A DNA stretch of 64,000 nt from Anthoceros angustus. Lineage: Eukaryota; Plantae; Anthocerotophyta. The translations under genes were made by a program, and so were the position numbers. Positions within the stretch are counted from its first letter, which is position 1. Each line of letters opens with the position of its first letter. Location of the stretch: the NCBI GenBank assembly GCA_010909165.1, contig MU008196.1:1-64000 (forward strand). Reading direction: 5' to 3'. Below are positions 2,030 to 39,219 of this stretch, in pieces. Under the pieces are notes generated by a model. It saw nothing but the letters and a program-made list of their open reading frames with translations, was not told the origin of the DNA and did not search any database.

Positions 2030-2753
2030 TACCGGAGTGTGTGTAGCTCACTTGCCAGTCTCACAGCCCTACCAACCTTTGACTTTTCCTTGTCGTTTAC
2101 CGTTCTTCTTTCTCAGGATATCCTCTCGCTTCCTAACAATATTTACAACTCCATTTCAAGATTCTGAAATTTTCCGCATGCTCCTCTTCAATCGCTTCTT
2201 AGCCAAAAAAATCAAACTTCGTTCTTTGGCTCTTTGAATGGTTGCCCAAACTTTCGTTCCACATACTCCCCACCTCACCGCTTGCGTCGCAAACAACTTT
2301 GGTCGAGGTACTTTTGACTTTCCACCCGCTCACTCTAGGGCAATACTTCCAGCATGAGTTGCACAGATCCATTTCGTACATCTGCGACTACCTCGTAAGG
2401 TCCCATCCATCTTAGCCTAAGCTTCCTGGAAAGTCTAGGTACCGACTATCATATAGAAGAACCAAATCCCGCCCACGATAGCCTCCTGCTTCCTCAACCT
2501 CCCATCATGCCTGCTTCCGGGTTCCACAGATGAGTTTCCTCTAAAGCATCCTCCTCGTTCCTCCTTCTATGAAGCATTCTAGTCTAGCTACGGCTACTTC
2601 TTCTGGTCATGCGTTCATCCTCCATGATCCTCGTAGGTACTTCAAATTCCACGCATCACAGTGCCATGCCATCGTTAGATAATAAGGGTCTTCTTGGTGG
2701 TTACCTTCTCCGTCTTGTAAGCCCACGTCTGCAACAGCATCCCAATCATCGTA
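2030..2753 (-). pseudogene. pol: Gypsy (Athila/Tat-like) integrase C-terminus and 3' UTR, interrupted at ~2753
   Basis: Minus-strand translation LLYDSRYLDFPG-L-LRWMGPYEVV (GPY/F module, ~2350-2460) and DDWDA at ~2735-2750. Confidence 0.8.
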
Positions 2754-3238
2754 AAGTCGCGGCCTCAGGCCTTGATTAGTTTTCGGGGTAGTGCGTGAAT
2801 TTTAGAGAGAATCGGCCTTTTGGCCATTATTTTACCAGATAGTAAAATTCATTACACTATAGTAGAAAACATGCCAAGTGGGGTGGATATGATCTACCAT
2901 CAAGGTGGAAAAGCGAGCACTAGAGTAGAAAACATGACGACCAAGTGAATACCGGGTCTAGAAGCTCATTCTAGAAATCCCACCAAAATCGCTAATCACA
3001 AAAACATTTTACATTAAATAATATTCATGCGGATCCGGGATATACAAAAACCAACAAAGAACCCTTTTCTTTGCGAGTTTCCTGTATATCCGTATGAAAT
3101 AATTCAACTAATGAAGAGTAAATACCATTATAGAGTGAACTCGCTTCAACAAAACCTACAAACAAAACCAAAATTAGCACCCAAACCGTAATTACGTGCT
3201 ACTAGTAAACACTAAAAATAAAAACATTGATACTCACC

Positions 3239-6200
3239 TTATTTTGGGAAATTCTTGTACAATTATACTGATTGAAAATGTAATTTTCACGACCACTTGG
3301 CTTGATTGGTACTTATACGCATTATCATAATTGGCAACCAATTGATGAAGGCGAGGACTTGGAAATTGACCTTCTTAGGTCACAACCTAAAACAACACAA
3401 CCATTAATTTTCAATCTAGTAGATTAATAAAAAGCATAAAGCTTACCGATCGGATTTTCGCGAGATAGCGATTGAAATATCTCGAGGCACATCCTTACGC
3501 TCTGTTGTCTTTCCACGTAATCTCCGAACCTCTTGCTCTTCTGCTGCTTGATTTCTCTTGATGCTTAATATGCTCTTGTCTCCTCTCCATTCTCACTCTG
3601 AATCTCAAGGGCTTTCTCTCTTTGCTTAGAGACTCGTAATTCAAGCCCTTTTCTCTGTCTCTCTATAAGTGCCTCCAAATCCTTTTGAAACTCCATTTCT
3701 GTTTCAATTTGTCATTCTCCAATTCCCGTTCTCGGAGATCTGCAAGCTGCTCAAAGCCACTTACATTTCCATTTGCGATCCAGTGCAATATATCAGAGGT
3801 GCTACCACCACATTCTGGTTAACGGATGACGATCACACTCACTGCACAATGCCCTCCAAGAGGGCCACGCATCAACTTCCCTCGTGTATCAATGTTGAAA
3901 TGAGGACGATGGCACTTACACTAGTCGAAGGATCACAATGCCAAGAACACAATCGAAACTCCAAAATGAATGAAAACAACAAACAAGCGACAAAGAATCA
4001 ACCTTGTCAACATATGGAATTTAGTAGAACACCCATCGTTGGTGCTAGTATCCATCTGGATGCCTTGTAGCTTTCAAGGTGCGCCGGTAAAAAAAAACCG
4101 GTATGATTAAAAAACTAACATGGCGGGACTACAACAAAGCAACTTCACAATACCAACGAACTTCAAGATGGACCACATGGTGCGGAAAAACTCGATTCGG
4201 TCCCAACATTGTTCGAGTCCTTTCATGATGAATAACGAGGTGGCCACGGGAGGAAAGACCCAAATCGAAACAAGTCGGGACACGAGTTTGACACAAGTCC
4301 CTACATACTTGATACAAATCTCAAACACTTACATTACTAACGTGTTGCACAAGGGGCCGATCTTGGTGACTCGAAAATACTATTTCAGGAGTTACATTCA
4401 ACACTGTTGACGGAAGAACACCCCTTAAATCATCCTGCATCCGATTGAGTTCTTCATTTAAAAGCTCCTGATAAGATCGTCGTTCACCGGGAACAAGAAC
4501 TCTTGCAGCAGCTGCCTGTTTTGCTTGACCAGAACGGTCATATCTGCAAAACATATGAGAACGTTAGGAACGAGCATACAAAGACTCAAATGTCACAAGC
4601 TTTCACAACATATTACCTTGAAAATCCAGCATCCGTTTATGGCGGTCACTTCTCCCGGAGGGCACAGGCCATCGTCAAGCGTGTAATCATCGTTACAGCT
4701 CTTATTGGTGTAGTAGCCAACAAGCCCAGTTGACCATGGTCTTCATAAATCTTGTGACATTCCTTTTGAAACACGAAGTTTTGCATACCAAGCCGAACAA
4801 AAACAAGCGTTAGTAAATAGAAACCACAAAACTCAAGCCCAATAAACCAAAAACTTACATTGATCTTGGGTTATCAATGGTTGAATTGAAGAAAACAATT
4901 GACAAATTCTTGTCATGTGCGAGACCACTTGGGAGAGTGATCAATATGACTTTAAAGGTTTCGATGGCGTCCTTTAGATCTTGACCTTTTGCGGAAATGC
5001 TCACTCGGTAGTTCTTCATATCCACTTTGTAATTTTTGAATCGTTCTTCATACACAAAATGAAGCGAGCTCATCTGATACATCAAAACATCAAACAAACA
5101 GTAAAACAAAAAGACTACACCTACTGAACAAAAGGTCCGCCTGAATCTGATGCAAATGAGAAGTCCCTAATGAGCAGGTTATGTAACTCTTCACCACCTC
5201 GAACCCCAAACCTGGTCATGCAAAAATATGCACACCTGCAAACAATATAAGCATAAGGGCTCCAGGTTTAAGAGACCATAAATGAACAATCAAAGTGCAC
5301 CCCCAAAACCAACAATATTACCTTTTCCCAAATGAGCATTGATGATCTACGTGTGAAAGAATCGGTCGCTCATCATCGAAATCAACTTCACCTCTTTTCG
5401 ACATGACACAATCCCAAGGTCCTTGCGATTTTCATGGGCAACCACTGCACAGGACCCATGGAAAATTCCATGAAACAAGTTGATCAGAACATCGAACCAA
5501 GCGGCTTTGGTTCAGATGCACTGTTAAAATCCGGTTAAACCCACGAAGAAAGACATCACTGCACAAGTGAAGATCGTCGGTCATGTGAAAGGAAAGTCGA
5601 ACTATCAAAATCAACAAGTAAGAAAACATCACTACTTACGTTTACGGAGAAAATCTGTTGTCCTTGATTCGAACTTGATGGAAAAAGGTATCGAATAAGA
5701 TTTAGATCCTTGTAAGGAATATCCTCAACAGATCCCATCCCCACACTCACTTTCATAAAGGCCGAGGCGACTTGACACGGTTATTACGCGTTTGACCTAT
5801 CCTCCCCACCACTCAAAGCATCATTCACAGCTCCCTCGGGGTGGGGTCAAATCGCTCTCAAAATTTCTTCATCATCAATTTCCTCCATACCCATGGCAAA
5901 GTCATCTTGGGACCGGCACTTTAGCCTCTCAAACATATCGAGCACTTCTTGATCGGGGATGACTCGGTCGGGAACCACAGGCATGGAAAAGCGCGCCTGT
6001 AAGCATCTGTTCACAGCACACAAATCTCTAGACTCTAGAGAGGCTTTGGCATCACAACCATGGGATCGTCGGTTATCAAGAAATCATTCTCCCCAGCTGG
6101 ACCCCTCTCGACAATGGGACATAGTTAGTAATCTCGCAGAGGACCTTCAACCACAGTCGGTGTCACCCTTCTCCTCTTTACACAAACTCACCGCATCGAG

Positions 6201-6424
6201 CATCCTTCTTGGATGAGAAGTGCCTTGGCGGTTTAGGAATGCCTTTTTGGAACTAAATATGTTCCTTCACCAAGACACCATCAACTTTACCATCATCCTG
6301 CGTGGATGAGTTGCGATGTGGAAACGGTGACTTGACACGTTGTCTAGTGTACGCTTATGACTTGACCGGGGACCCTTGCTTCTTTCCCGGTCCAAGGCCC
6401 GGTGGGTTTCCTTTTAGGTGCCAT
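3239..6424 (-). pseudogene. Multi-exon Crypton/DUF3504-type tyrosine recombinase, copy 1 (frameshifted as assembled)
   Basis: ATG 6424 (MAPKRKP). GT-AG introns at 5639-5559, 5321-5236 and 4616-4544, among others. Exons give EDIPYKDLNL-RYLF-QVRIKD, CAYFCMTRFGVRGGEELHNLLIRDFSF (Arg codon 5199-5201), VYEERFKNY, WYAKLRVSK, GLVGYYTNKS, (TG)H and R|YDRS (Tyr codon 4540-4542). TAA at 3239-3241. Confidence 0.85.
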
Positions 6425-7569
6425 CGCAAGCCAGACATTAGAGTGGACAAGGAACACAACATCCTAAAGAACAAACAAAACCACAACAAAAACACACTTA
6501 CGTGGTGTTGAACTTCAAATACGAACTTCTGTGAAGGGTCTAACAGATGATTATAAAACAATTTAAGGCGAAGGGGGTGTGGGGATAGCACAGAACATTC
6601 ATTGAATCTACACATTGTCAAATTAGATCCCTCCACTTTATGTTAGTGAGCAAACTCCTTTCCCAAAAGTACCCACATACTGCCTGTAATTAGACCCTTT
6701 TGCCGAATAATATCAAAAACAAACAAAAATGTTAGGCGGTGCACAACATGAAAGCATACTAGGAGATTCAATGGACCGTCAGGCGAAGGTTATCACGATT
6801 CACGCAGACGGACCAGTCGAGCGTTGGAGCCAACCCTTCACACGATAGCAGCAATGCCTACACACACAATTTGATGGATTAGATAACTTAAAAGTGGTAG
6901 CAAAGCAAACTTGACAAGACGAAGGCATATGCACAACATATCAAAAACCGATCATCAGGTCTAAACGTAAAGTTGACATACCAGATCAAGGGTTACACCA
7001 TGGACAAATTTCCTCCCGACAAAGCTTGTCTGCACCAAAACAAAACAAATAAGAACAAGAATGCACGCTTTGCAGGCTTAAAACAGACAAACGATACAGA
7101 AGCATTACGGGCTGTGATGCAAAGGATGATAAATGTAAAATACAAGACAAATGAAAACTGCTGTAACAGTTCAGACACCCTGTTTACCAACACTGTCTTC
7201 CGACTAGAAAATCTTGAAATTACTTCCTGCGTCAAACGAACAAAAGACAATGAAAAACTAATACAAGCTACTGAAGAGAATCTAACTGACAGCATTTTTC
7301 AAAAGCAGCATCTTCATAAAGACAGAGTACTAAACAAAGTTCATTGGCGTACCAAACAAAATCCCGAAATATGTCCGCCACATAGACCGAAACATGACTG
7401 CATCAAAAACAGCGAGAAGGTAAGAACACACGAGGAAAGCAAACCACATCCGGGAAAAATACACTTTGACCTTAGTCACAAACACATATTAAGACGTGAA
7501 AACAAAAACACAAAGAATTACGATGGCGAAGCAAATCAAGTCGGACTAAGTGAGAGAAAAAATAGGCGT

Positions 7570-8330
7570 GACAAAACAAAACCAAGCCATGGAACCAGAC
7601 GGCATCAAGCGAGAGACAAAAAGTCACTTCAAACAAAACGAACAAGTTATAGCAGCGTTTACAGAAGGTGAAAACAAGCAGTGAAGGTGAAAGAATCGCA
7701 CATGAAACAGACCTAAACAAAACTTAGCTTGGAAGTAACAACAGAAGCCCGAACCTCTCAGACAAAGACAGATACTGCTGGTCGATTTCAAAAAAAACGA
7801 ACAGACACAATCGACGATGGCGTCAACAGCAAACAAGTCAACAAGAGAGTACAGCAAACGAAATCAGCAAGAACCAAGCTTATACAGAAAGTTAAAGTTT
7901 AAAACGACACACATAACAGAACGTCACAGCAACAAAAACAAGAACACACAGAGGTCATCGAGACACAGACAAGAAAACAAGCAGAGATGCAAACTGATAC
8001 CAAGCCATGACCACACGACAACAAGCGAACAGATAAAAGGTCACTTCCAACAATCAAACAGAAACGACCGTTAAGAGAAGGTCAAAAAAGAACGCAAGAA
8101 TCACTCATGGAATAGACATGACAACCTTCAACTAGATGCAACAATAGAATGAAGGCTCAAAAACGCAGACAGATACTGCTTGTCGTTTTCACAAAAACGA
8201 AGCAGACTCCATCGACGCTAGCATCAACAGCAAACAAAATAAACAAAGACAACCTACAGCAACCAGAAATCAGCTAGCAACGGAGCTATCGGCGAACGTA
8301 AACCAAATACCATCATAGCAAAGTAGTCAT
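7570..8330. repeat. Degenerate ~410 bp tandem repeat in the A/C-rich leader
   Basis: ACAGATACTGCT-GTCG...ATCGACG...CAACAGCAAACAA at ~7768 and ~8169. CCAAGCCATG...GTCACTTC at ~7581 and ~7999. Confidence 0.6.
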
Positions 8331-8659
8331 TCCCTATGATTTAGGAATCGCGCACAGCAAAAAACAACATCGGAAGCAGACGAGATCAGAAAAAAGCCGC
8401 GATACAAAAAGCCACCGGTAAACAGGAGGTAGAAAAACACTTAAACCGAACAGACAGAACAAAAACCGCACCGACCATACACCGGAGCGCCAGAACACCA
8501 CCGGCGTAGCAAAACAACACCAAAACCGCACAAAACAACAAAAGAAAGAAACAATAGACGAGAAACAACAGAAAATAACGTAAGCGCAAATGGACAGCGA
8601 CTTCAAAGAAGACAGAGGGCCTTAACCTTTAAACGACAGAAACCTCAGCCTCCGGTGCC

Positions 8660-8950
8660 AATCAACCTTGGCCTTCGGACTAAGCAACAAGCTTAACCTG
8701 ACGGGCAAGGACACCGTGACCTTCGGACCAGGCAAACCCTTGGCCTTCGAAAGAACCAACAGACCAGCAACACCTTGGCCTTCGAAACAATCTATACAGA
8801 GACCTTGGCCTTTGAACGAAGGCTGGAAAGGCCTTAGCCTTTCGAAAGGACCTGAAAAACGCATTGGCCTGAAAACTTAAACCAAAGCCTAGAAGCCTAG
8901 AACACCTTGGCCTTCAAAGAAGGCTACAAAGCCTAAGCCTTGGACCGAGC
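8660..8950. repeat. Cluster of ~9 CCTTGGCCTTCG-like motifs at ~30 bp spacing
   Basis: Copies near 8666, 8718, 8738, 8773, 8804, 8831, 8863, 8904 and 8938. Confidence 0.75.
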
Positions 8951-9167
8951 CAAATCACTTTGGCTGCGAAACTAGAACTAGACAACTCATGGACTTGAGC
9001 AAGCACGGAAGCATGCACAAGGCATAGGCCATGGCCCTCACAACACCGGACACGGGCCTTGAAGCAGAGGAGGAAGACCTTTGAGACTAAAGGCGAACAA
9101 GCCGAGGCCCGGACGGGCCACCTCGGCCTCACAGGAATGCAAAAGACCTCCCGCTTTGGAGAAGCCA

Positions 9168-9189
9168 TTTATATATAGGCAAACCCTAA
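9168..9189 (-). promoter_or_regulatory. Candidate TATA box plus telobox for recombinase copy 1
   Basis: Minus-strand CCTATATATAAA (9168-9179) next to AAACCCTAA (9181-9189). The same arrangement occurs at 17276-17299 in copy 2. Confidence 0.5.
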
Positions 9190-9467
9190 ACACTCTCCCT
9201 CGGCGCGCGTTCTCTCTCTACCAAAGCTGATTTGAATTAAAACCTAAGATTAGGGGATTCCAAACCCTCGTACGTGGGTTCGCCATTCACGCCAGCCTGT
9301 TCAACCAAACCTAGGTTCTTGATTCCAAACCTAGCCTAACCGCACCAAACCTAATCTCCGAACCCCGATGCGTGAATAACTGAACCTACTGTTCAACCAC
9401 GGTGCCACGCACGACCTCGAACCATCTAGAAGTTTCGTTTCGGTATAGCGGCAACATGGCGCTTCTT

Positions 9468-10225
9468 TCGATGGGCAGGCGCGCACAATCATGTCGTTGT
9501 AGTATGGAGTCCGTTCCCAAGAGAATGATAGCTCCGTTTGCAGCGATTCTCACCTTTCTTGGTCCACTTCACCGCACTCAATCTTCGTTTACCACTATTT
9601 ATAACGTTCACGAGCACGCGGACGCCTGCGGGATGTGGCGCGGCGGAAATAAGTCGCTAGGGTTTGGGTGGGACCCACCTCGGTGTCAAGCAACTACCCT
9701 AGTGAGAGCCACCGCCGTGGAATAAGATTTGCGGTCGTGGAATAAGAGCCGTGGTAGTTAGACAAGTCGGGGTAGTAGTGGTGAGTAGATAGGTAAGAGG
9801 AGTAGCAGTAAGTCTTGACTTAGGTGAAGGTCAAGAGATAGAAGTTAGGCCTCTTGGCACAAACCATTCCCTTGGGAGCGAATCCTAAGCCTACAACGAC
9901 ATTGAGGGCGAATGTGGACCTCACTGTCCCCGGACACAACCACACTCCACACCAGCCCAAATTTAGCTCTTGCAAGCCGCGCAAACCGCACTTTAGCCCT
10001 CCTTGGATACCGCCACCGAGGCAGGCAACCCTAATGGATCATTCCAAAATCCTAATCCTATCTAAATGCCTATTTTCCTATGCCCGCATCCCTAATTAAT
10101 CGCCTAATTACTCTATACATTTATTCCCACAGGGCATATATAGTGGATATCCTATTCTAATTTCCTGAGATCGCTACAAGTGGTAGTCTGCTACCCCGTG
10201 GTAGTCCGCTCGCCACCATCGTGTG
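9468..10225. mobile_element. Nested Gypsy LTR fragments: family C LTR end (~9468-9700), family B-like LTR end (~9700-9950), family A LTR start (~9950-10225)
   Basis: GCGCGCACAATC..GTCGTTGTAGT matches 53970-54005 and the reverse complement of 32345-32375. ACCATTCCCTTGGG..GTGGACCTC matches 34711-34769. 10050-10220 matches 1845-2010. Confidence 0.6.
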
Positions 10226-10229
10226 GCAG

Positions 10230-11177
10230 CCTCACGGCAGGCCACCACCTCGGGCCTTCCCCGCCCAGCCTTAGGGTCATTTTGACCCGCTTTACCCCTG
10301 GGATATCCTCTCACCTATCAATATCCTACAACCTGGCTCCAAGCAAATTCTCAACATGTCCCTCTTCAATCGTTTTCATAAAAAATTAAATTAGCTCATC
10401 CTCTCTGGCTCTTTTGGACGTTGCCCAAACTTTCAGTCCATTCTCCTCTCACCGCTTAAGGCCCTGCAAACAACATGTATCTCGGGTTGAAGGTACTTTA
10501 ACCTTCCACCCATTCACCGTGGTCGGGCGAGTATCTAATACTCGAGTTGCAGGATCCATTCTCGACACCGCCACCACCGTAAGGTCCCATCCATCTCACC
10601 TAAGCTTCTGGAAGTCCAGTACCGACTATCAGAGAAGAACTAAATCGGCTGATAGCCTCCCCTCGCCTTACCTTCCATCGTGGCCTTTTCCGAGTTCTTG
10701 AATGGCCGAGTCTCCTCTAAGCATCTTCCAAGGCTCTTCCCCGCCTATGAAGATTCTAACCTAGCTATCGCTATCCCCACAACATCGCGTCTCCTCCATG
10801 ATCCCGTAGGTAGGTACTAAATTCCACAGCATCACATGGACATGCCATACGATAATAAGGGTCTTCGGTCATTTTAAGGTCCCGAAGCCCATGGTGTCAG
10901 ATGCAATTTAGCATCCCAATCATACATGCTCATGATTACCTTGGTGAGGATTGTGCATAGCAACGTGCCTTCTCCCACAATCCGTGCCTTGGGGTTGTGT
11001 CGTCATGGCGGATATTGAAGTAGGTGGTTAGGACTCAACGAGAGTTGAGGAAATCGCCCCCGTCACGACCAACTCTAAAGGACACCCATACCGTTATGAT
11101 GTTCTCGAACTTCGCCATCGCGGCGCGGCCGTCCTTCTTGTTGCTTCTCAACCCACCATTGGTGCTAACAATCCGTA
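10230..11177 (-). pseudogene. pol: Second Gypsy family A integrase fragment (core end plus GPY/F), interrupted at 11177
   Basis: 10936-11177 is colinear with integrase 25339-25610. 10230-10920 is colinear with 2030-2750. Confidence 0.8.
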
Positions 11178-11666
11178 AAGTCGCGCCTGCGTCTGGGCCT
11201 CGACGCTGGTTTTTTCGCAGCAGTGAATTTTTAGAGAGAATCGCCTTTGGCCATTATTTTACACAAGATAGTAAAATTCATTACAATATAGTAGAAAACA
11301 TGCCAAGTGGGGTGAATATGATCTACCATCAAGGTGGAAAACAGAGCACTAGAGTAGAAAACATGACGACCAAGTGAATACCAAAGGCCTAGTAGAAGCT
11401 CATTCTAGAATCCCACCAAAATCGCTAATCAAAAACATTTGTTAAATAATATTCATGCGATCCGTGGATATACAAAACCAACAAAGAACCCTTTTCTTTG
11501 CGAGTTTCCTGATATCCGTAATTGCATGAAAAATTCAACTAATGAAGAGTAAATGATAGAGTGAACTCGCTTCAACAAGAAACCTACAAACAAAACCAAA
11601 ATTAGCACCCAAACCGTAATTACGCTGCTACTAGTAAACACTAAAATAAAAACATTGATACTCACC

Positions 11667-14600
11667 TTATTTTGGGAAATTTACTGTACAATTATACAGA
11701 TTGAAATGTAATTTCACGACCACTTGGCTTGATTGGTACTTGTACAAGATTATCATAATTGGCAACCAATTGATGAAGCGAGGACTTGAAATTGACCATC
11801 TTCCGCAAGGTCACAACCTAAAACAACACAACCATTAATTTTCAATCTAGTAAACTGATTAATAAAAGCATAAAGCTTACCGATCCCGACGGATTTTCGC
11901 AGATAGCAAATATCTCGAGGCACATCCTTCCTCTGTTGTCTTTCCCACGTAATCTCCGAACCTCTTGCTGCTCTTTTCCGCTGCCGCTTTCTTGATGCTT
12001 AATATGCTCTTGTCTCCTCTCGCATTTCTCCGCCTCGAATCTCAAGGGCTTTCTTTGCTTAGAGACTCGTAATTCAACCGCCTCTGCCTCTCTATAAGTG
12101 CCTCCAAATCCTTTTGTCACTGAAACTCCATTTCGCTTCAATTTGTCATTCTCCAATTCCGTTGGAGATCTGGCAAGTCAAAGCCACTTACATTTCCATT
12201 TGCAACACAGGCAATATCCAGGTGCTACCACAGCCACATTTTGTCCCCGGGTTAACTGATGATCGATCACACTCACTCGCACAATGCCCTCCAACAGAGG
12301 GCCATCGCATCCACTTCCCTGTATCAATGTTGAAATGAGGGATGAACTTACACTAGTCGAAGGATTCACCGCCAAGAAGAACACAATCGAAACTCCAAAA
12401 TGAATGAAAACAACAAAAACAACAAAGAATCAACCTTGTCAACATATGGAATTTTAGTAGAACGTTGGTCCGCTAGTCCATCCGGATGCTGCCAACTTTT
12501 CAAGGTGCCTTAAAAACAAGAACCAAGATGATTAAAAAACTAACATGGCACTACAACAAAGCAACTTCACAATACCAACTGAACTTCAAGACCACATGGT
12601 GCGAAAAACTTAGTTCCCAACATTGTTCGTGGGTCCGCTTTCATGATGAATAACAGAGTGGCCAGAGGGGACAAAAACAAGTCGACATGATTTTGACACA
12701 AGTCCCTACATACTTGATACAAATCTCAAACACTTACATTACTAACGTGTTGCACTTGACCGATCTTGTCGACTAAAATACTATTTCGGAGTTACATTCA
12801 ACATTGACGGAAGAACACCCTTAAATCATCCCCGCATCCGATTGAGTTCTTCATTTAAAAGCTCGATAAGATCGCTCACCGTGAACAAGAACTCTTCTGC
12901 TTTGCTTGACCGAACTCCATATCGAAAACATATGAGAACGTTAGAACGCATACAAGACTCAAATGTCACAAGCTTTCACAACATATTACCTTGAAAATAA
13001 AGATCCGTTTTATGGCGGTCCACACTTCTCCCAAAGATCGAGGGCACCGAGCCATCGTCAAACGCGTGTAATCATCGTTACACGGCAGCTCTTATTGGTG
13101 TAGTAGCCAACAAGCCCACCGCTCACCATGGTCTTCATAAATCTTGACAACATTCCTTTTGAAACACGAAGTTTTGCATACCAAGCGAAAAAACAACAAG
13201 CTTAGTAAATAAAACCACAAAACTCAAGCCCAATAAACCAAAAACTTACATTGGATCTTGGGTTATCAATGGTTGAATTGAAGAGAAACCCCGAATTGAC
13301 AAATTCTTGTCATGTGCACCACTTGGGAGAGTGATCAAATGACTTTAAAGGTTTCGACGTCCTTTCAGAGATCTTGACCTTTGACTAAAATGCTCACTCG
13401 GTAGTTCTTCATATCCACTTTGTAATTTTTGAATGCCGCTTCATACCGCAAATGAAGACGAGCTCAATACTGACATCAAAACATCAAACAAACAAGAAAC
13501 AAAAGACTACACCATTGAACAAAAGGTCCTTTGAATCGATGCAAATGAGAAGTCCCTAATGAGGTTATGTAACTCTTCACCACCTCGAACCCCAAACTGG
13601 TCATGCAAAAATATGCACACCGCAAACAATAAGCATAAGGGCTCGTGTTTAAGAGACCATAAATGAACAATCAAAGTGCACCCCAAAACCAACAATATTA
13701 CCTTTTGAGCCCAAATGAGCATTGATGATCTCGTGTGAAAGAATCCGCTCATCATCAAATCAACTTCACCTCTTTTCGACATGACACAATCCCAAGGTCC
13801 TTGCTGATTTTCATGGACGCAACCAACTCACCCATGGAAAATTCCATGAAACATGTTGATCACGGAACATCGAACCAAGCCGGCTTTGGTTGTGATGCAC
13901 TTCCTTGTTAAACCTTAAACCCACGAAAGAAAGACATCACCGCAAGTGAAGATCAAGAATCGTCATGTGAAAGGAAAGTCGAACTATCAAAATCAACAAG
14001 TAAGAAAACATCACTACTTACGCTTCGGAGAAAATCTCTGTTGTCCTTGATTCGAACTTGATGGAAAAAGGGTATCGAATAAGATTTAGATCCTTGTAAG
14101 GAATATCCTCATTAGCAGTATCCCATCCCCTGACCCCACTCACTTTCATAAAGGCCCTGAGACGACTTCGACACCAGTTATTCCGCCGCTTTGACCTATC
14201 CTCCCACCACTCAAAGCATCATTCACAGCTCCCTCGACGACGGTCAAATCCTCGCCTCCGAAAATTTCTTCATCATCAATTTCCTCCATGGTCATCTCAT
14301 CTGGACCAAAGACACTTTAGCCTCTCAAACATATCGAGCACTTCTTGATCGTGATGACCTGTGGTCGTGAACCACAACAGTATGGAAATCGCCCACCAGA
14401 AAGCATCTGCTCAACCACAGACACAAATCTCTAGACTCTAGACAGGCTTTGGCGGTCACAACCATGGGGATCGTTATCAAGAAATCATTCTCCCCACAAC
14501 CGGACCCCTCTCTATAATCGGGACATAGTTAGTAATCTCGCAAGAGGACCTTCAACCAATGCCACAGTCGAGTGTCCACCCTTCTTCTCTGCACAAACTC

Positions 14601-14849
14601 ACCGCACGCCGAGCATCCTTCTTGGATGAGAAGTGCCTTGGCGGTTTAGGAATGCCTTTTTGGAACTAAATATGTTCCTTCACTGTGCACCAAGACACCA
14701 TCAACTTTACCATCATCCCGCAGGATGAGTTGCGGTGGAGGACCCGACTTGACACGCTGTCTAGTGTACGGCTTAGCCATGACTTCGGCCAGGGACCCTT
14801 GCTTCTTTCCCGGTCCAGCAGGCCCAGTGGGTTTCCTTTTGGGTGCCAT
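11667..14849 (-). pseudogene. Multi-exon Crypton/DUF3504-type tyrosine recombinase, copy 2 (frameshifted as assembled)
   Basis: ATG 14849 directly after an acceptor (TTTTCTTTGCAG|ATG). FGVRGGEELHNL (Arg 13585-13587), WYAKLRVSKGMLSRFMKTMVSGGLVGYYTNKSCRVTMITR (~13165-13045), coiled-coil exon ~12150-11880, C-terminal FNLYNCTVNFPK*, TAA at 11667-11669. Confidence 0.85.
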
Positions 14850-17275
14850 CTGCAAAGAAAAGCACCAGTGTGATCAAAACACAAAAAACATTTGAACAAG
14901 TTAATGAACTTGCAAACCAATATGAAAAGACTTACATGGAGGTGAATGCTTTCAAATGAGAACCTGCTGAAGGGTCTAAAAGTTGATTATACCACAATCG
15001 AAAAGAAGGAGGGTGTGGAGATATTGCGAGACATCCTTTGATCTATACATTGTTAGATTTTGCGATCCCTCCATTTTAAGTTAGAGAGAAACTTCCATTT
15101 TAACAAACCCCACATACTTCAAACACTCTTTTCCAACAATATTGATAGATGTTAGCCCGACACAACAGCCTTGATCACCGACATCAAGAAACACAGAATT
15201 TCACACTGTGCAAATAGTTATCCCGAGACACGATGACAAATTAGAATGTTGGAAGAGACCACACGATGACAAATTTCCTACAATGAAACGAGTTAGTGAG
15301 GTTAGATATTAATGTCTCAAGAATAAACGACAAAAGGAAAGGTAAACATCTCTTACTAAAATCAATTCACTAAGAATTTTCCGGCGGGTCCGCAACAAAG
15401 GCCAAAAGAGTTAACAACAAACCAAGATCGAAACAAACATAGCAACAAGAAAGAACCACGATTGGACCCGCAACACCAACCATGACCAAGAGATACAAAC
15501 CACGAAACCCGACATAATGCAACAAACAAGAACAAAAAGTCGACATAAAACACGAAACTAAACATACATCAAATTAGATAAACGAAAGTGACTAACAAAC
15601 GTCACGGACATCAGCACAAAGACAATTACGCGAATAAAAGACGACAAAAGTGATCTACCTTCCAAATGCGGATAAACAAGAAGCACACACATCAAGAAGA
15701 AACGATAACAAGACAAAACCAAACAAAATAAGCGAACAGAACAACAACCGAGACAAATACCTTTAAAATGTTTTGCCCAAAGGCGATGCATGAACAAGCT
15801 CTTCCGCATGAAAATAAGAGCATAAGTACAAGTAATGTAACACAACCAAAGTTAAGACGCAACACTTTGAGAGACAAGCACAAAAAGCTGCGAGATTACA
15901 AATCAAGTAACGCAACGCTGATGCCGTATCAGAGATAAGAACAATGTTTATACTTCACAAAGAAGAACAAATAAGACAATACAGCAAAGATACATCATAA
16001 ACAAGCACGTGAGAAAACGAGATAAACACCAACAAATGACTTATTGAACAAGACATAGTATATATAGAAACAGCAGATGATGAAAACACAAGACACAAGA
16101 ACAAGACATTACACGATCAAGACACGAAAGCCTTGAACGTATAACGACGCACAACGACAAGCGATAAACACATTAACATGTAAGACACACAAAGACAAGC
16201 AGAAGGAGCAACATATTCACAAAGCAAAACAAAGACTCACACAAGACAACGAAGGATGATGAGGTACAAAGCAACAACCAAAAAGAGCAAAATGAGAACA
16301 CGAGCAAAGAAAGACACCAAAAAGCACACAAAACGTCATGACATAAACAAAGAAGGCAAGTGAGAACAAACGATGAACACTTATAGTCAAACGCATGACA
16401 TAAGACACGCCTTAAAACAACGACAACGAAACCCTGTCGAACAAAAACAACAATAAAAGAAAACAAAAGAAGACCTTGGCAACGAAAGCATAAAGCAACA
16501 TAAAAGAACGCGAACAACGCCGAAGCAATGACATGAAGAACAAAAACAGAATCAACGACATGATGCAAACACAACAAGACGCGAAAGAAACGCTAAGACA
16601 TCTAAAACAAGCTACACAACTAGAACGCGAGCAGGCACAAAAGTGAGAAACCAACCGCGACAAAAGCACAAGAAACAACAAAAACAAACAACGAAAAAAA
16701 ACACAGAGAAAGAAGGGAAGAGGAAACACAGAGGGAATGACGCCAAGGTCACAAGCCCAAAACCCTTGGCCTCGACAAAAACAACAATGAAAGAAACCAA
16801 TAACAAAGAAGACCTTGAGAAAGCATAAAGCGTAAACATAAAAGGAAACCACTAAGGAACAACGAAACCAGAGCTCCTCGGCCGAAAGCACATCAAAATA
16901 CCTTGAAACGGACTGACCAACTACAGAGACCGCAAGCTAACAAGACGAAAATCACCACATGATGCAAACACCACAAGACGGGCGAAAAGAAACGCTAAGG
17001 CACCAAAAAGGGAGCTAGGAGCGGGGACCTTAGAAGCGCCTTGACGCAAGGCACCTTGGCCTGGGACCGCAACAAGTGAGAAACCAACTTGGCCCTCGGA
17101 CAAAAGCGATCAATGAAACTTGAAATGAAACAACCTTGGAAATCGGACAAACGGTGCGAGGGACATAGAGAAAAGAGGGAGTAGAGAAGGGAGACGCAGA
17201 GAGAGCGAGAGAAACACCTGGAAGGTCCCAAGCCCCAAAAGCACCAGCAAAAGACCAAAAAGGTCCGTGAACCCG

Positions 17276-17556
17276 CTTATATAGGCCCCAAAACCCTAAC
17301 CCTTCTCTCCGTCCCGCCACTCTCTCTCTAACCAAATTTGAAAATACCAAACCTACTCTACCGAGCCGGACAAACCAACCTAGGTCGCCATTCGTCGCCG
17401 CCTCCTCAACCAACCTAGTCACCTTGTTCCAAACCTAGCCATGCAACACCTAACCTAATTTCCGAACCTCTTCGAGGTGGCGAAACGAACTCCAATGAAC
17501 ACCGCCACGCACACGGCTCTTCAAGCATCCGAACCCTAATTCAAGTCTATTTAAGG
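17276..17556. promoter_or_regulatory. Candidate bidirectional promoter (duplicated at ~21546-21826)
   Basis: Minus-strand CCTATATAAG (17276-17285) with telobox (17291-17299) and plus-strand CTATTTAAGG (17547-17556). T-rich leaders run outward on opposite strands. Confidence 0.45.
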
Positions 17557-19034
17557 AGCACTACTACTTTCATCGCCCACCACGCCTGCTAGGGTCGCCC
17601 CTTCTACGCCCCGCTAGCACGCCGCCAGTGTGTCACTCGCCCCACAGCCTCGCTAGTTCTCTTACGCTAGTTCCATCCTCCGCCAGCCGGTTCCGCTCCT
17701 ACCACGCCCTACCGCCCACCACGCCGACAGGCTGCCTCCTTCTCCACGCCCCTTGCTCACCTCGCAGAAGGTGCCTTCACCTATGAACGCCCTCGCCCAC
17801 CACGCCAACAGCCGCTCTTTTCTCAGTAGTGAATAGCGAGTCTGCCTTCCGCTCAGAGCCCGAACGCCTCGGATCAACACTCCGACTGCTTGGCTTCCTC
17901 CGCCTTTGGTTCCAGCGACGTATAAGCAATACCTCATCATCGCCTCGAGGTGAAGAGCACGTGAAGACGCATTGGCAACAAAGGTGAATTACCGCCCGGT
18001 TTTGTTTTGCCTTTGAAATTGTTTGTCGTGCTTTGTGCCTATGCTCATGCTTTGATCTACCGAGGGATACCACACAACGCCAAGGTTCCAACAGCGTAAG
18101 AGTTGGACTCGCAAGAACGAGTGCACATTTTCCCGCCGACGGCTTCGTTTCACTCACCGTCCCGCTTAAGCTCGCGCCAAGGAGACAAAAGAGGTCTCTT
18201 GGTCCTCCGGTACGACGACAAACACTCTTACGTCGGTCGCGCCTTTTTATTCTTTTGCCGCTAACACCCGGCTGCCTCGCGCACTTGCCTCCGCCTTTGC
18301 TTGTGAATAGCTTATCGCTAGTTTGCTTGCAAAAGCCTTTCTTACCTTGAATGTCGCAGAAAACCGAGACTCCTCTACGCCTTCGAGTCCAACACGCAAG
18401 AAGACATCGAACGGTAACAAGCCTCTGTAGCGAACTTATCTTTCGCTTTCGCTTTCAAAGTCGCTACATCGACCAAGAAACGCTAGCAAGTCGATAGTTC
18501 TCTCGACCGCTTGACGCTTTCTCGCTTAACTGCCTCTTTATTCTCGCTTAATCTCGGTTAATCATCCGGACGTAACCTGCTCAAGAGTGACTCAAGACGC
18601 CACGCGCAGCCACTGCATGCAAGAGCTACTAACGCCGTCTCAACCTATAGAGGTCATGCTCGATGCCTTTTCCTTAGGCATACAATTGTCTTAAACCTCG
18701 TGTTCAAAATGTAGCTAGAGTCGATTGGTCATTCAGCAATGTTTGAGTCAACATCGCTCGTGACAACAACTTGTCGAGTCAACTTTGCGGGTATTTATAG
18801 GCATGCCAACATGCGCAAGCGTGGCATGCATCGCGCAGCATTTCTTGATATTGGATCACCCGACGAAGTTCAAAAGTCCGTAATCATATTTTATTTCTAA
18901 CCGTGTTTTTCCTAACTATTCGAAGTCGAAATTGCATGTCCGTATCTTAACGGAGACGCATGCCAGCTTGAGCGTAAGTCATATCCGTTTTGTGTTGCCG
19001 TAGTATATTTTATCAGCTGAAAGTACGCGGCATG

Positions 19035-19124
19035 ACACTGCCTAGTGTACGGCTTAGCCATGACTTCGGCCAGGACCCTTGCTTCTTTCCGGTCCAGGCC
19101 CATGGGTTTCCTTTTGGGTGCCAT
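19035..19124 (-). pseudogene. 5' stub of the recombinase gene created by the tandem duplication
   Basis: MAPKRKP start at 19124, truncated at the duplication junction ~19034. Confidence 0.8.
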
Positions 19125-22100
19125 CTCGCAAAGAAAAGCACGTGTGATCAAAACACAAAAACATTTGAACAAGTTAATGAACTTGCAAACCAATATGAAA
19201 AGACTTACATGGAGGTGAATGCTTTCAAATGAGAACTCTGAAGGGTCTAAAAGTTGATTATACCACAATCGAAAAGAAGGAGGGTGTGGAGATATTGCGA
19301 GACATCCTTTGATCTATACATTGTTAGATTTTGCGATCCCTCCATTTTAAGTTAGAGAGAAACTTCCATTTTAACAAACCCCACATACTTCAAACACTCT
19401 TTTCCAACAATATTGATAGATGTTAGCCCGACACAACAGCCTTGATCACCGACATCAAGAAACACAGAATTTCACACTGTGCAAATAGTTATCCCGAGAC
19501 ACGATGACAAATTAGAATGTTGGAAGAGACCACACGATGACAAATTTCCTACAATGAAACGAGTTAGTGAGGTTAGATATTAATGTCTCAAGAATAAACG
19601 ACAAAGGAAAGGGTAAACATCTCTTACTAAAATCAATTCACTAAGAATTTTCCGGCGGGTCCGCAACAAAGGCCAAAAGAGTTAACAACAAACCAAGATC
19701 GAAACAAACATAGCAACAAGAAAGAACCACGATTGGACCCGCAACACCAACCATGACCAAGAGATACAAACCACGAAACCCGACATAATGCAACAAACAA
19801 GAACAAAAAGTCGACATAAAACACGAAACTAAACATACATCAAATTAGATAAACGAAAGTGACTAACAAACGTCACGGACATCAGCACAAAGACAATTAC
19901 GCGAATAAAAGACGACAAAAGTGATCTACCTTCCAAATGCGGATAAACAAGAAGCACACACATCAAGAAGAAACGATAACAAGACAAAACCAAACAAAAT
20001 AAGCGAACAGAACAACAACCGAGACAAATACCTTTAAAATGTTTTGCCCAAAGGCGATGCATGAACAAGCTCTTCCGCATGAAAAATAAGAGCATAAGTA
20101 CAAGTAATGTAACACAACCAAAGTTAAGACGCAACACTTTGAGAGACAAGCACAAAAAGCTGCGAGATTACAAATCAAGTAACGCAACGCTGATGCCGTA
20201 TCAGAGATAAGAACAATGTTTATACTTCACAAAGAAGAACAAATAAGACAATACAGCAAAGATACATCATAAACAAGCACGTGAGAAAACGAGATAAACA
20301 CCAACAAATGACTTATTGAACAAGACATAGTATATATAGAAACAGCAGATGATGAAAACACAAGACACAAGAACAAGACATTACACGATCAAGACACGAA
20401 AGCCTTGAACGTATAACGACGCACAACGACAAGCGATAAACACATTAACATGTAAGACACACAAAGACAAGCAGAAGGAGCAACATATTCACAAAGCAAA
20501 ACAAAGACTCACACAAGACAACGAAGGATGATGAGGTACAAAGCAACAACCAAAAAGAGCAAAATGAGAACACGAGCAAAGAAAGACACCAAAAAGCACA
20601 CAAAACGTCATGACATAAACAAAGAAGGCAAGTGAGAACAAACGATGAACACTTATAGTCAAACGCATGACATAAGACACGCCTTAAAACAACGACAACG
20701 AAACCCTGTCGAACAAAACAACAATAAAAGAAAACAAAAGAAGACCTTGGCAACGAAAGCATAAAGCAACATAAAAGAACGCGAACAACGCCGAAGCAAT
20801 GACATGAAGAACAAAAACAGAATCAACGACATGATGCAAACACAACAAGACGCGAAAGAAACGCTAAGACATCTAAAACAAGCTACACAACTAGAACGCG
20901 AGCAGGCACAAAAGTGAGAAACCAACCGCGACAAAAGCACAAGAAACAAACAAAACAAACAACGAAAAAAAACACAGAGAAAGAAGGGAAGAGGAAACAC
21001 AGAGGGAATGACGCCAAGGTCACAAGCCCAAAACCCTTGGCCTCGACAAAACAACAATGAAAGAAACCAATAACAAAGAAGACCTTGAGAAAGCATAAAG
21101 CGTAAACATAAAAGGAAACCACTAAGGAACAACGAAACCAGAGCTCCTCGGCCGAAAGCACATCAAAATACCTTGAAACGGACTGACCAACTACAGAGAC
21201 CGCAAGCTAACAAGACGAAAATCACCACATGATGCAAACACCACAAGACGGGCGAAAAGAAACGCTAAGGCACCAAAAAGGGAGCTAGGAGCGGGGACCT
21301 TAGAAGCGCCTTGACGCAAGGCACCTTGGCCTGGGACCGCAACAAGTGAGAAACCAACTTGGCCCTCGGACAAAAGCGATCAATGAAACTTGAAATGAAA
21401 CAACCTTGGAAATCGGACAAACGGTGCGAGGGACATAGAGAAAAGAGGGAGTAGAGAAGGGAGACGCAGAGAGAGCGAGAGAAACACCTGGAAGGTCCCA
21501 AGCCCCAAAAGCACCAGCAAAAGACCAAAAAGGTCCGTGAACCCGCTTATATAGGCCCCAAAACCCTAACCCTTCTCTCCGTCCCGCCACTCTCTCTCTA
21601 ACCAAATTTGAAAATACCAAACCTACTCTACCGAGCCGGACAAACCAACCTAGGTCGCCATTCGTCGCCGCCTCCTCAACCAACCTAGTCACCTTGTTCC
21701 AAACCTAGCCATGCAACACCTAACCTAATTTCCGAACCTCTTCGAGGTGGCGAAACGAACTCCAATGAACACCGCCACGCACACGGCTCTTCAAGCATCC
21801 GAACCCTAATTCAAGTCTATTTAAGGAGCACTACTACTTTCATCGCCCACCACGCCTGCTAGGGTCGCCCCTTCTACGCCCCGCTAGCACGCCGCCAGTG
21901 TGTCACTCGCCCCACAGCCTCGCTAGTTCTCTTACGCTAGTTCCATCCTCCGCCAGCCGGTTCCGCTCCTACCACGCCCTACCGCCCACCACGCCGACAG
22001 GCTGCCTCCTTCTCCACGCCCCTTGCTCACCTCGCAGAAGGTGCCTTCACCTATGAACGCCCTCGCCCACCACGCCAACAGCCGCTCTTTTCTCAGTAGT

Positions 22101-23407
22101 GAATAGCGAGTCTGCCTTCCGCTCAGAGCCCGAACGCCTCGGATCAACACTCCGACTGCTTGGCTTCCTCCGCCTTTGGTTCCAGCGACGTATAAGCAAT
22201 ACCTCATCATCGCCTCGAGGTGAAGAGCACGTGAAGACGCATTGGCAACAAAGGTGAATTACCGCCCGGTTTTGTTTTGCCTTTGAAATTGTTTGTCGTG
22301 CTTTGTGCCTATGCTCATGCTTTGATCTACCGAGGGATACCACACAACGCCAAGGTTCCAACAGCGTAAGAGTTGGACTCGCAAGAACGAGTGCACATTT
22401 TCCCGCCGACGGCTTCGTTTCACTCACCGTCCCGCTTAAGCTCGCGCCAAGGAGACAAAAGAGGTCTCTTGGTCCTCCGGTACGACGACAAACACTCTTA
22501 CGTCGGTCGCGCCTTTTTATTCTTTTGCCGCTAACACCCGGCTGCCTCGCGCACTTGCCTCCGCCTTTGCTTGTGAATAGCTTATCGCTAGTTTGCTTGC
22601 AAAAGCCTTTCTTACCTTGAATGTCGCAGAAAACCGAGACTCCTCTACGCCTTCGAGTCCAACACGCAAGAAGACATCGAACGGTAACAAGCCTCTGTAG
22701 CGAACTTATCTTTCGCTTTCGCTTTCAAAGTCGCTACATCGACCAAGAAACGCTAGCAAGTCGATAGTTCTCTCGACCGCTTGACGCTTTCTCGCTTAAC
22801 TGCCTCTTTATTCTCGCTTAATCTCGGTTAATCATCCGGACGTAACCTGCTCAAGAGTGACTCAAGACGCCACGCGCAGCCACTGCATGCAAGAGCTACT
22901 AACGCCGTCTCAACCTATAGAGGTCATGCTCGATGCCTTTTCCTTAGGCATACAATTGTCTTAAACCTCGTGTTCAAAATGTAGCTAGAGTCGATTGGTC
23001 ATTCAGCAATGTTTGAGTCAACATCGCTCGTGACAACAACTTGTCGAGTCAACTTTGCGGGTATTTATAGGCATGCCAACATGCGCAAGCGTGGCATGCA
23101 TCGCGCAGCATTTCTTGATATTGGATCACCCGACGAAGTTCAAAAGTCCGTAATCATATTTTATTTCTAACCGTGTTTTTCCTAACTATTCGAAGTCGAA
23201 ATTGCATGTCCGTATCTTAACGGAGACGCATGCCAGCTTGAGCGTAAGTCATATCCGTTTTGTGTTGCCGTAGTATATTTTATCAGCTGAAAGTACGCGG
23301 CATGCACAACATGCCGCACTGTGCAACAAAGAACTTACGAAGAGTCGCAAGCACGTGCATTTTAAAAGTTCAAGTTATTCATTGGCCCGACTTGCTTTTA
23401 TTGCGTA

Positions 23408-25150
23408 ATGGCATCCGAGAATGAGAGCAACGATGAAATGGTCGACATCCAAGAAGGTAATGATCATTTCGCCACTACCAAATCCATTTTGGTTGACTCA
23501 TGGCTAAAATGATTTTCCGTAAAGTGACGACAATAGTAAAGACCCAACAAACCTTAACCGGGCGATCAAACAACAATGTTCCCACCCATGGGGATCCGGG
23601 ATATGATGACAGAAGTTCAAATCCTCTCATTGAGATACGAAAGATAGTTGAGAAAGGTAATACATTTCAATTAATCAATTGAATCTCCGTGAACATTTCT
23701 AACTCGATATCTTTGAGAGACCGAGCACACTATGTTCACATCAATGGACAAAAGGACTTGCAGTGCCCGCCAATTGGAAAAAATTAAAAGGTAAAGACTT
23801 GGTTCGCAACTTTCAGACATAACGATATCCGCAACTCACTTTAGTTGTATATGGTTACAGGATATTAAGAAGAATCTCCAACAACAATTAGAGTTGGAAA
23901 CAATGACTGGTCCGGAGGTTTAATGGACAACGATCTCAATTCACGATTTTGGAGGTAAACAACTAACACTTGTATTATATGTATTTGTTTACAGTAATAA
24001 ATACTAATTATTTGTTTACAAAAGTCAAGTGCAGCAAAGGAAATTAAGGAGAAAATTGAAGCAATGGATGATAAAATCAACAACACGCCCATCTTTCATC
24101 GTAATTGCTATTGTATGTTTGTAATTAATAATTAGTATATTTGTAAGTAGTATATAACTTAACATCTTTTTTCAAAGGACAAAAGAGGAAAAAGACGAGT
24201 CAGAAGATAATGCACCAACGTATGGACCATCGAAAGAATTTGCCGATTTTGGAAAATGGATGGATAACTTTCAGTATCCACAAGTCTTCCAAGATTTTAA
24301 AAATAGATATGTTCCCATTTGGGAACATAGCCTCAAAGATCCAGCGCAGCCGATCTGCAATGAAGATGGGTCGACAGCAACCCTAGAGCAGTACATGGAG
24401 ATCCAGAAAAGTAAGTGTTATCGGTTTATATTGTTCTTAGTATAGTTTACTGAATCAGTTTATGTAGTACTAATGAAATTTGTGTTTTGGTAATGTAGAA
24501 ATATCAGCCATTGAAAATAAGGAGCTAAAACCACGACTTGTTGACTCGATGGAAGATCCGAAACTACAAAAACATTCAAAAGGTTAGTTCAGAATAATTT
24601 ATTATGTAAACAAGGAAAATTGATATTCGTATTTTCAAATATGTAAATTCTAACGTTGATACCTCTTGCGTAACGCCCAATCACATTTCCGTAGTGTGGG
24701 AAATCTTCACAGCCATTGCCTCACATTAGTGAGAAAGGTATTTACCGAGCAAGATCTTCTTCGACTTGAAATGGAGGTAAAATATTAACTCCTTTTTGTT
24801 TTGTTTGTAGTTATCAAGAATCAAAAGGAGTTGTTTGCACTATTTGAGGTTAGTATATCATATTTACAGTGGTGAAATTATATATGTAATATTTGACATT
24901 TACCATTGCCGTAAATATTCCCGCTTGACGAAATTTTAAAATGATTAACTTTCTATCCGGACCGTATAATGAACAAAGAAAGAAGTATTATTCAAGACAA
25001 AGCATCCAAATCGCTGTGTACACCCCTTCAACGCCAGAAGAAAGTTAGAAAGAGAAATGCCAAAACCTGAAAAGACAAACGAAAGCGTAGTGAAAGTGAA
25101 AACTCGCGGTAAAACTCAAGTGCGAAGGTGAAAACTCGAAGAGAGAGAAA
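23408..25150 (+). pseudogene. Intron-rich gene of unknown function (ORF2 of the candidate element)
   Basis: ATG 23408 MASENESNDEMVDIQE|gtaatg. Short exons are separated by AT-rich ~70-110 bp GT-AG introns, e.g. GQKEEKDESEDNAPTYGPSKEFADFGKWMDNFQYPQVFQDFKNRYVPIWEHSLKDP...MEIQK|gtaagt and HCLTLVRKVFTEQDLLRLEME|gtaaaa. The 3' end is uncertain. Confidence 0.6.
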
Positions 25151-25326
25151 AAGACTTCTAGCTTGGGTGCACAAGGCAACAATTTAAGATAGCAGACCTC
25201 GCCTCCGGTTAAGTCGAGGCAGGCGTCTGCCCCGCCTACCGCCCCTTACGCTGGGAACGCGTCGACGGCCTAGAACGGTCTCGCCTAACGGCCTCGACGT
25301 TCTCGTGACGCCCTCCAGCGTCCTAA

Positions 25327-30195: not shown

Positions 30196-30313
30196 ACAGC
30201 GACACACATCGTTCCTTCAATTGCGGGACTCATTTGTGCTCATCTCCTTGTTGGTGTTCCTCTTCTTTGATAGGTGAAGAAGAGGACCTCGAATGACAAC
30301 ACTTACAGGAGAT

Positions 30314-30314
30314 N
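30314..30314. other. Single N: probable scaffold or contig join
   Basis: Sequence reads GATNC, and the family B LTR homology stops here. Confidence 0.7.
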
Positions 30315-38700: not shown

Positions 38701-39219
38701 AAAAGGGAAAGGAGAGAGTGTGCCAGTGAGGGGAGTATGCGGACTTTGAGAGAAACGGGAATGTTAGAAAGGGGAGGCGGAGCTATGAGATCGGTGGGCG
38801 ACGCCGGAGTGAGGCCTCGTGGTGTTCATGGTCATGGTGCCTAACTCGAACGCGAGCGCTCTGTGGAGTGAATTAGAGTAGGTGACTTAGGGTGTGTGCT
38901 GCGAAATCATAACCTTAGAGACCACGCCAGTGGAGGGTGACCACAGATAGTCACGACACGCTAAGGCTGGCGCCATGTGGTTGAATGAAATCACCACGGG
39001 TGGCGAACCCCCACCTCATGGGTGACCAGCCTTCCACTCTGTGGCCTGGTATTGATTATGGGTTCGTGGGTAGGACTCGTAGGAGGACTAAGACCCATAG
39101 TTTTAGAATATCATCTTGACACAAAACCATTCCCTTGGGATCGAATCCTAGGACTATAACGACATAGAGGTAAATGTGGCCTCCTTTGCTAGCCTTCTGG
39201 ATGCAAAACCCATTCCACA
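32799..39219 (+). mobile_element. Non-autonomous Gypsy family B element: LTR 32799-34798, gag-only internal region, LTR 37179-39219
   Basis: Both LTRs run TGTGGAA...TTCCACA. PBS-like TGGCTTCACGGGGAAGGG at 34802-34819 and PPT GAGAAGGGGAGTA at 37166-37178. No RT or integrase motif seen. Confidence 0.85.
35280..35800 (+). pseudogene. gag: Retrotransposon gag capsid-domain remnant
   Basis: HEDPHEFVERFEQL..PKKWYR..PTTFEELKECLCERFRGLTKGYVLSKLERLQRERKETLQAYVERFH across frameshifts. Confidence 0.75.

Follow-up and report, generated by a model that had tools for sequence, protein, structure and literature searches.

A decayed, probably Crypton-type tyrosine recombinase gene in two copies in the genome of Anthoceros angustus

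Introduction

Does the genome of a land plant carry a lineage of its own of Cryptons, of all classes of eukaryotic DNA transposons the least understood? The question is raised by a stretch of DNA from Anthoceros angustus (Anthocerotophyta; NCBI GenBank assembly GCA_010909165.1, contig MU008196.1, positions 1 to 64,000), the whole 64,000 nucleotides of which are referred to here as the window. An earlier note, made from the letters of this sequence, had read from the minus strand at 3239-6424 a spliced Crypton-type tyrosine recombinase (YR) gene, present in two copies and belonging to an uncharacterized plant lineage. Having followed the locus up by computation, we regard two homologous units of the window, E1 and E2, as probably being (at a rough probability of 0.7, judged from sequence) decayed copies of a 3′ module conserved in a high-copy Crypton-type DNA transposon, closest to CryptonA/DUF3504, which would have carried one many-intron tyrosine recombinase gene in a liverwort-like land plant. 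As to the novelty that the note claimed, no description of a land-plant Crypton was found in the literature, where fungi, animals, stramenopiles, Chlamydomonas and Glomeromycota are covered and with Repbase and Dfam unchecked, but Cryptons of green algae are already known and active (PMC9977147).

Two Decayed Copies of an Intron-Rich Gene

The two units, of about 3.93 kb each, both lie on the minus strand, E1 at 2750-6681 and E2 at 11174-15118, and are 84% identical over 4102 aligned columns. Self-BLAST matches E1 at 84% to 11223-15118, and alignment of the two copies sets the boundaries, high similarity starting at AGTATGTGGG (6681 in E1, 15118 in E2) and ending at GCGACTTTACG (2750 and 11174, respectively). 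A second copy had been claimed at 11667-14849; it is real and shares the structure of the first, down to all six GTAAGT donors, over a homologous span wider than the one first given. The copies differ from each other mainly by small insertions and deletions. Frameshifts and stops run throughout both of them in every frame, the longest stop-free stretches being 103-111 codons, and the exons, 20-70 residues long, are broken. Both copies are pseudogenes, neither able to make protein now.

That each unit represents an intron-rich gene on the minus strand is well supported by its sequence, because the donor consensus occurs on that strand only and is conserved in both copies: each has 6 GTAAGT and 10-11 GTRAGT on the minus strand, at homologous places, with the plus strand lacking both, while the remaining 56 kb of the window has just 3 more minus-strand GTAAGT. 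Between the coding blocks the sequence is T-rich and filled with stops, and one such stretch holds a CTAAC branch-point-like site. The junction that joins DAGFS to YDRS is canonical (GTAATA...TTGCAG) and keeps the frame.

Read from its 5′ end, the gene would begin at a putative start codon at 6422-6424 (MAPKRKP..., a basic N-terminus), to which a homologous start near 14850 corresponds in E2. The box I exon of E1 (5124-5234) contains FGVRGGEELHNLLIRDFSFAS, its first 7 codons being shifted by an extra base at 5211, and is followed at 4861-5070 by an exon with a candidate lysine motif (YEERFKNYK...), closed by the GTAAGT donor at 4858. The next block is best read in E2, where the exon part running from the WY motif to box II (WYAKLRVSKGMLSRFMKTMV..YYTNKSCRVTMITR) lies at 13064-13183 and its continuation in another frame (DDGSVPSIFGRSVDRHKTD, 13003-13059) carries the second-histidine motif. 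In E1 the corresponding region (4492-4650) reads SDRHK and DAGFS, followed by the GTAATA...TTGCAG intron and by the YDRSGQAKQAAAARVLV exon, which holds the candidate nucleophile tyrosine. The C-terminal part of the gene (3100-4335) consists of exon-like blocks of no recognisable domain, with GTAAGT donors at 4332, 3919 and 3764 and a GTGAGT donor at 3237. All of these features are on the minus strand. Four members of the catalytic set can be placed at CryptonA spacing, namely the first arginine (GVRGGEE), the second arginine (NKSCR), the second histidine (DRHK) and, 9 residues past the latter, the tyrosine (SRYDR); the catalytic lysine is a candidate only (FKNYK).

The peptides by which the earlier note had described the gene are, for the most part, on the minus strand within 3239-6424 or in the second copy. 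FGVRGGEELHNL was found in both copies and RYDRS..KQAAAARVL at 4492-4542. EDIPYKDLNL and RYLF are likewise in both, but HQVRIKD is in another frame; MKISKDLGIV..RKEVKLI is present but in the second copy alone (13758-13859), and WYAKLRVSKGMLSRFMKTM and YTNKSCRVTMITR are contiguous there alone (13064-13183). Two peptides are absent as written: YEERFKNY stands at 4861-5070 without the optional serine, and in place of TGH the motif is DRHK (4636-4650; 13003-13059). CAYFCMT belongs to a frame specific to the first copy, and because base 5211 is missing in E2 and in both DNA-run contigs (X1) that differ there, the older reading is VCIFLHDQFGVRGG / VCIFLHDQFGVRGGEEL. Taking out GT-AG introns is not enough to yield the list as it was given, which is a mosaic of two copies that needs several frameshift corrections besides splicing.

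Likeness to CryptonA Recombinases

Short segments (47-71 residues) of a published Crypton alignment (PMC3212892, Additional file 4) served as queries in tblastn searches of the whole window. The top match of the CryA1_SP C-terminal segment was the WY/box II exon of E2, at 24.3 bits and E 0.02, compared with 20.1 ± 1.4 bits and a maximum of 25.4 for shuffled queries, and for the CryA2_SK box I segment the two best of 285 matches were the box I exons of E1 and E2, which lie about 440 nt upstream of the WY/box II match on the same strand. A change of frame four bases past that match brings SVDRHKTD of E2 into register with SVSGHKAE, at a score equalled by only 9 of the 127,948 8-mers of the window. 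When the C-terminal catalytic half was assembled as an 82-residue read-through (13064-13183, 13009-13059, 4619-4633 and 4492-4542 joined, with X at each break), its alignment with CryA1_SP ran ungapped from WY to the tyrosine, 66 columns in all, at an uncorrected score of 66 against 22.9 ± 4.3 in 5000 shuffles. The histidine before the tyrosine is the CryptonA state, in contrast to the Trp that CryptonF, S, I and DIRS have there in the published alignment (PMC3212892). E thus appears to read like the CryptonA recombinases already published, with which it also shares His, not Trp, before Tyr; the statistics are post hoc and of moderate strength.

Element Ends and Probable Insertion into Gypsy Genes

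At their 3′ ends both copies terminate in the same 11 nucleotides, GCGACTT-TACG on the minus strand (2750-2760 in E1, 11174-11184 in E2), and this 11-mer, GCGACTTTACG, has exactly two occurrences in the 64 kb; tolerating one mismatch raises the number to 3, where 0.5 would be expected. Each terminus adjoins a minus-strand Ty3/Gypsy integrase gene, and the junctions were mapped by placing liverwort pol proteins onto the window. E1 is joined to the (Y)DDWDA codons of Gypsy-C (1737-2753), an integrase C-terminal part that resumes directly after E1 at what we call site 1, and E2 is joined to the (A)TD codons of Gypsy-A (9960-11177), a 5′-truncated fragment from the integrase to the 3′ end. Gypsy-A begins at the exact end of E2 (site 2), about 250 bp upstream of site 1, and runs unbroken through the latter. 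On the other side of E2 lies Gypsy-B (25339-26905), an integrase with H2C2 and rve domains whose likeness to liverwort Gypsy pol ends at about 25343-25339, after ..TILTKV.

The TACG at both 3′ junctions is assignable equally to the target. At site 2 it is also the target's own in the homologous Gypsy-B, which reads GCT ACG GAT, and at site 1 Gypsy-C reads TAC GAT GAT TGG in frame, the same place in Gypsy-A being TAT GAT. No inverted repeats were found, and there is no sign of a target-site duplication. A comparison of the 3′ end with the putative 5′ end gave no significant terminal direct repeats, since 22 of 500 and 97 of 500 shuffles reached the observed score. By analogy, the TACG overlaps at both junctions fit Crypton-type integration as modelled by Goodwin, in the outline that PMC3212892 gives of it: the recombinase would link the element end, through a short sequence there, to an identical sequence in the target, leaving no target-site duplication. 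Such a meeting of end and target has been seen in action for CryptonF-1_cRei, where the end CACCG meets the target CAYCG (PMC9977147).

The Gypsy copies are only 66-74% alike, in contrast to 84% for E1 and E2, which indicates that E1 and E2 entered already diverged Gypsy copies independently and that they are younger than the split of their Gypsy hosts. A plain segmental duplication of E together with its flank was considered and rejected, the flanks being far more diverged than E and different integrase positions being joined.

As for the size of the element, it is doubtful that the core of about 3.93 kb is the whole of it, since the two copies have non-Gypsy 5′ flanks that show weak homology to one another. 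The flank of E1, here U1 (6682-9827), is weakly collinear at 61-66% with that of E2, here U2 (15119-25323), 9139-9364 resembling 17247-17468 at 66% and 8434-8696 resembling 16661-16835 at 61-63%; both are on the minus strand. U2 extends to the break with Gypsy-B and probably forms the 5′ portion of a ~9.9-kb element, whose 5′ junction would fall within 25317-25339. A continuation of Gypsy-B past 25339 was tried and rejected: the sequence beyond has no likeness to Gypsy-A, Gypsy-C or liverwort pol. The full element, of about 10 kb, would thus comprise a fast-diverging upstream part and the conserved 3′ module. No Pfam domain was found in the open reading frames (ORFs) of U1, U2 or E, the rve domains belonging to the flanking Gypsy copies.

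Within U2 there is a very recent tandem duplication of 4.27 kb (14739-19021 and 19022-23304, 99.3% identical), which takes in the first ~380 bp of E2, with the MAPKRKP start among them, and 3.9 kb of T-rich sequence upstream. On the plus strand, 23408-25150 shows only short stop-free pieces (45-95 codons).

The simplest account of this arrangement would be a nested series of insertions in which E1 and E2 each came to lie in Ty3/Gypsy integrase genes. First, an element measuring about 9.9 kb (25323 to 11174, with the 4.27-kb tandem duplication subtracted) would have entered a Gypsy at site 1, Gypsy-A would have entered that element, and a second element would then have entered Gypsy-A at site 2; unequal recombination between the two elements, with loss of the intervening sequence, may have left the present order of Gypsy-B, U2, E2, Gypsy-A from site 2 onward, U1, E1 and Gypsy-C. 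The two 3′ junctions and this nested structure are what is new from the window.

Copy Number and Host

The E family is highly repeated, because 639 Logan contigs of a DNA run from the same organism fall on 2700-6700 at a likeness of at least 80% (202 of them at a likeness of at least 99%), and the summed depth of that run is in the hundreds over 2834-6317, being low at both ends. The earlier note had taken the genome to be plant-like, and this stands. In translation, the Gypsy ORF beside E2 (25184-26905) shares 64-66% identity with Riccia sorocarpa proteins and has more matches in Calypogeia fissa, Riccia fluitans and Marchantia polymorpha, and the likeness of the Gypsy integrases supports a host genome of a liverwort-like land plant. 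This ORF, on the minus strand, is intact-looking at 573 codons, and the window contains three diverged Ty3/Gypsy integrase pieces.

Alternative Explanations

A number of results weigh against reading E as a Crypton recombinase, and most of them would be expected if the repeat and its intron-rich gene were real while the YR-like chain of motifs was a product of chance and of free choice of frames and joins. No exon piece of E searched singly matched Pfam, NCBIfam, PHROGs, PDB or Atlas, the 82-residue read-through matched neither Pfam nor PHROGs, and the PF12012 profile matched neither the box I exon nor the exon of the lysine region, searched singly; as a control, a 71-residue segment of CryptonA (CryA1_SP) did match PF00589, at 4.5e-6, as well as phage integrase families. 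The YR/DUF3504 profile match that the earlier note had proposed as a check was not obtained with these pieces. An exhaustive HMMER search of 1.84 billion representatives found no relative of the longest exon piece (its lone match, a bacterial Ig-repeat protein, is spurious), nor did word-indexed protein searches with the YEERFKNYK exon region and the 82-residue read-through, nor two metagenome scans. Single tblastn matches are weak, at E 0.02 and 0.14 beside a noise match at E 0.03, and the CryA1_SP box I segment missed the E locus altogether. The catalytic pattern is not intact, the box II histidine being lysine in both copies (NKSCR, Lys-x-x-Arg where the earlier note had His-x-x-Arg). Neither are all introns canonical GT-AG as had been claimed, the WY exon having an acceptor without AG in E1 and E2, and RNA support for the E splice junctions was not found, the sole listed RNA run giving one contig, less than 90% alike, on 3746-3859. 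The length of about 10 kb and the position of the 5′ end, moreover, derive from one junction and a weak collinear likeness. Finally, protein-to-DNA alignment tolerant of frameshifts and introns did no better than shuffled queries; since free joining of frames alone can yield scores such as that of the read-through, its uncorrected p-value overstates the case, and for this reason we rely on co-location instead. Against chance, independent segments of two published Cryptons have their best matches in neighbouring exons, in the right order and on the right strand, with the histidine motif in register and a gapless spacing from WY to the tyrosine. An approximate and post hoc joint estimate (0.02 × ~1e-3 × ~0.05) comes to 1e-5 or lower, and we consider a chance resemblance quite unlikely. 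Of the Crypton/DUF3504 assignment, what stands is the block-by-block likeness to the published alignment and the intron-rich gene; what does not is any profile match and an unbroken catalytic pattern.

The gene might instead be YR-like and yet lie outside a Crypton DNA transposon, as part of a DIRS/Ngaro-type retroelement or as an expanded family of domesticated DUF3504-like host genes. The 5′ end of the element, visible at one junction only (25317-25339) and uncertain, leaves room for this, and lysine in place of the box II histidine recalls domesticated, inactive DUF3504 proteins (PMC3212892). The unit, however, has no reverse transcriptase/RNase H (RT/RNase H), the Gypsy pieces are flanks with a DDE integrase of their own, many retained introns speak against a retroelement, and the second histidine (DRHK) stands where DIRS and CryptonF, S and I have Trp; for a host gene, on the other hand, a family seen in hundreds of contigs, with copies that have decayed and that sit in Gypsy genes, would be out of keeping, suiting a transposon better. 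We judge this explanation very unlikely, and contamination or misassembly from a fungus or alga extremely improbable. For the latter it can be said that Glomhoppers, DUF3504-type CryptonA elements of Glomeromycota, are abundant in fungi living with bryophytes (PMC13465315). Both copies are nevertheless physically joined to Gypsy integrases closest to liverwort elements, and a separate DNA run of the same organism shows the family at high copy number, two facts that together argue against contamination. The preferred explanation remains that of a decayed Crypton-type transposon.

Other Repeats of the Window

A repeat of about 100-130 bp with a tRNA T-arm-like TAGGATTCGATCCC, possibly of the short interspersed element (SINE) kind, is found at 9828-9958, 34699-34798, 39114-39183 and 59112-59245. 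One of its copies abuts the 3′ end of Gypsy-A, and ARAGORN detected no tRNA in the window. The GC-rich right half contains further repeat pairs (30312-31771 and 54317-55836; 52291-53881 and 60020-61611; 55114-56403 and 56409-57686; 33064-34841 and 37444-39272), which include inverted pairs at 85% and 73% and a tandem pair at 84%. Ten long ORFs tested in the 30-61 kb region gave no Pfam domain.

Significance and Comparison with Known Systems

E1 and E2 themselves are dead and have no function. Crypton activity was first observed recently, in a green alga, and a high-copy CryptonA-like family in a genome of bryophyte type, if true, would widen the range of the class and raise the question of exchange with symbiotic fungi. 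Its copy number would also offer many insertion junctions from which target choice could be worked out; the two junctions described here already point to TACG as common to element end and target. It may be speculated that liverwort-like land plants have their own abundant lineage of CryptonA-type elements of about 10 kb, which integrate by TACG microhomology, carry lysine for the box II histidine, may still be active elsewhere in the genome (given the 202 contigs at least 99% alike) and may be linked by horizontal transfer to the Glomhoppers of bryophyte-associated Glomeromycota; taken as a whole, we hold this picture to be unlikely.

Among known systems, E comes closest to CryptonA and the animal Crypton-derived YRs (CryA1_SP, CryA2_SK, CryA1_OL and ATF7IP-YR; Kojima and Jurka, 2011, PMC3212892). 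The blocks follow in the same order, with box I as F-G-x-R-G-x-x-E, the KN motif and WY...K..L...MK, and then box II as Y-T-N-x-S-x-R-x-T-x-I..L, S-V-x-x-H-K and the tyrosine 9 residues on; the alignment from WY to the tyrosine is gapless, His and not Trp precedes Tyr, and the gene has introns (PMC3212892). Unlike CryptonA, E has Lys for the box II His and Arg for the Gly before the second His and scores with neither PF00589 nor PF12012; its host is a land plant, its unit is likely much larger (~10 kb) and both copies are dead. Glomhoppers, which encode DUF3504, are likened to it by description: they have a CryptonA-type recombinase and many truncated or intron-bearing copies in repeat-rich compartments, and their hosts are in contact with bryophytes, but unlike E they match PF12012 and keep the catalytic residues (PMC13465315).

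In its manner of integration the resemblance is to CryptonF-1_cRei of Chlamydomonas reinhardtii (PMC9977147), where the end motif equals the target (CACCG/CAYCG there, TACG at two junctions here), no target-site duplication is evident and the host also belongs to the green lineage. That element is of another Crypton group, CryptonF having Trp at the position of the second His and a GCR1_C domain described for fungal and oomycete members, and its activity has been observed directly, whereas E is known from fossil junctions. The DIRS/Ngaro YR retrotransposons likewise encode a tyrosine recombinase and make no target-site duplications, but unlike E they possess RT/RNase H and characteristic terminal repeats, lack introns and have Trp before Tyr.

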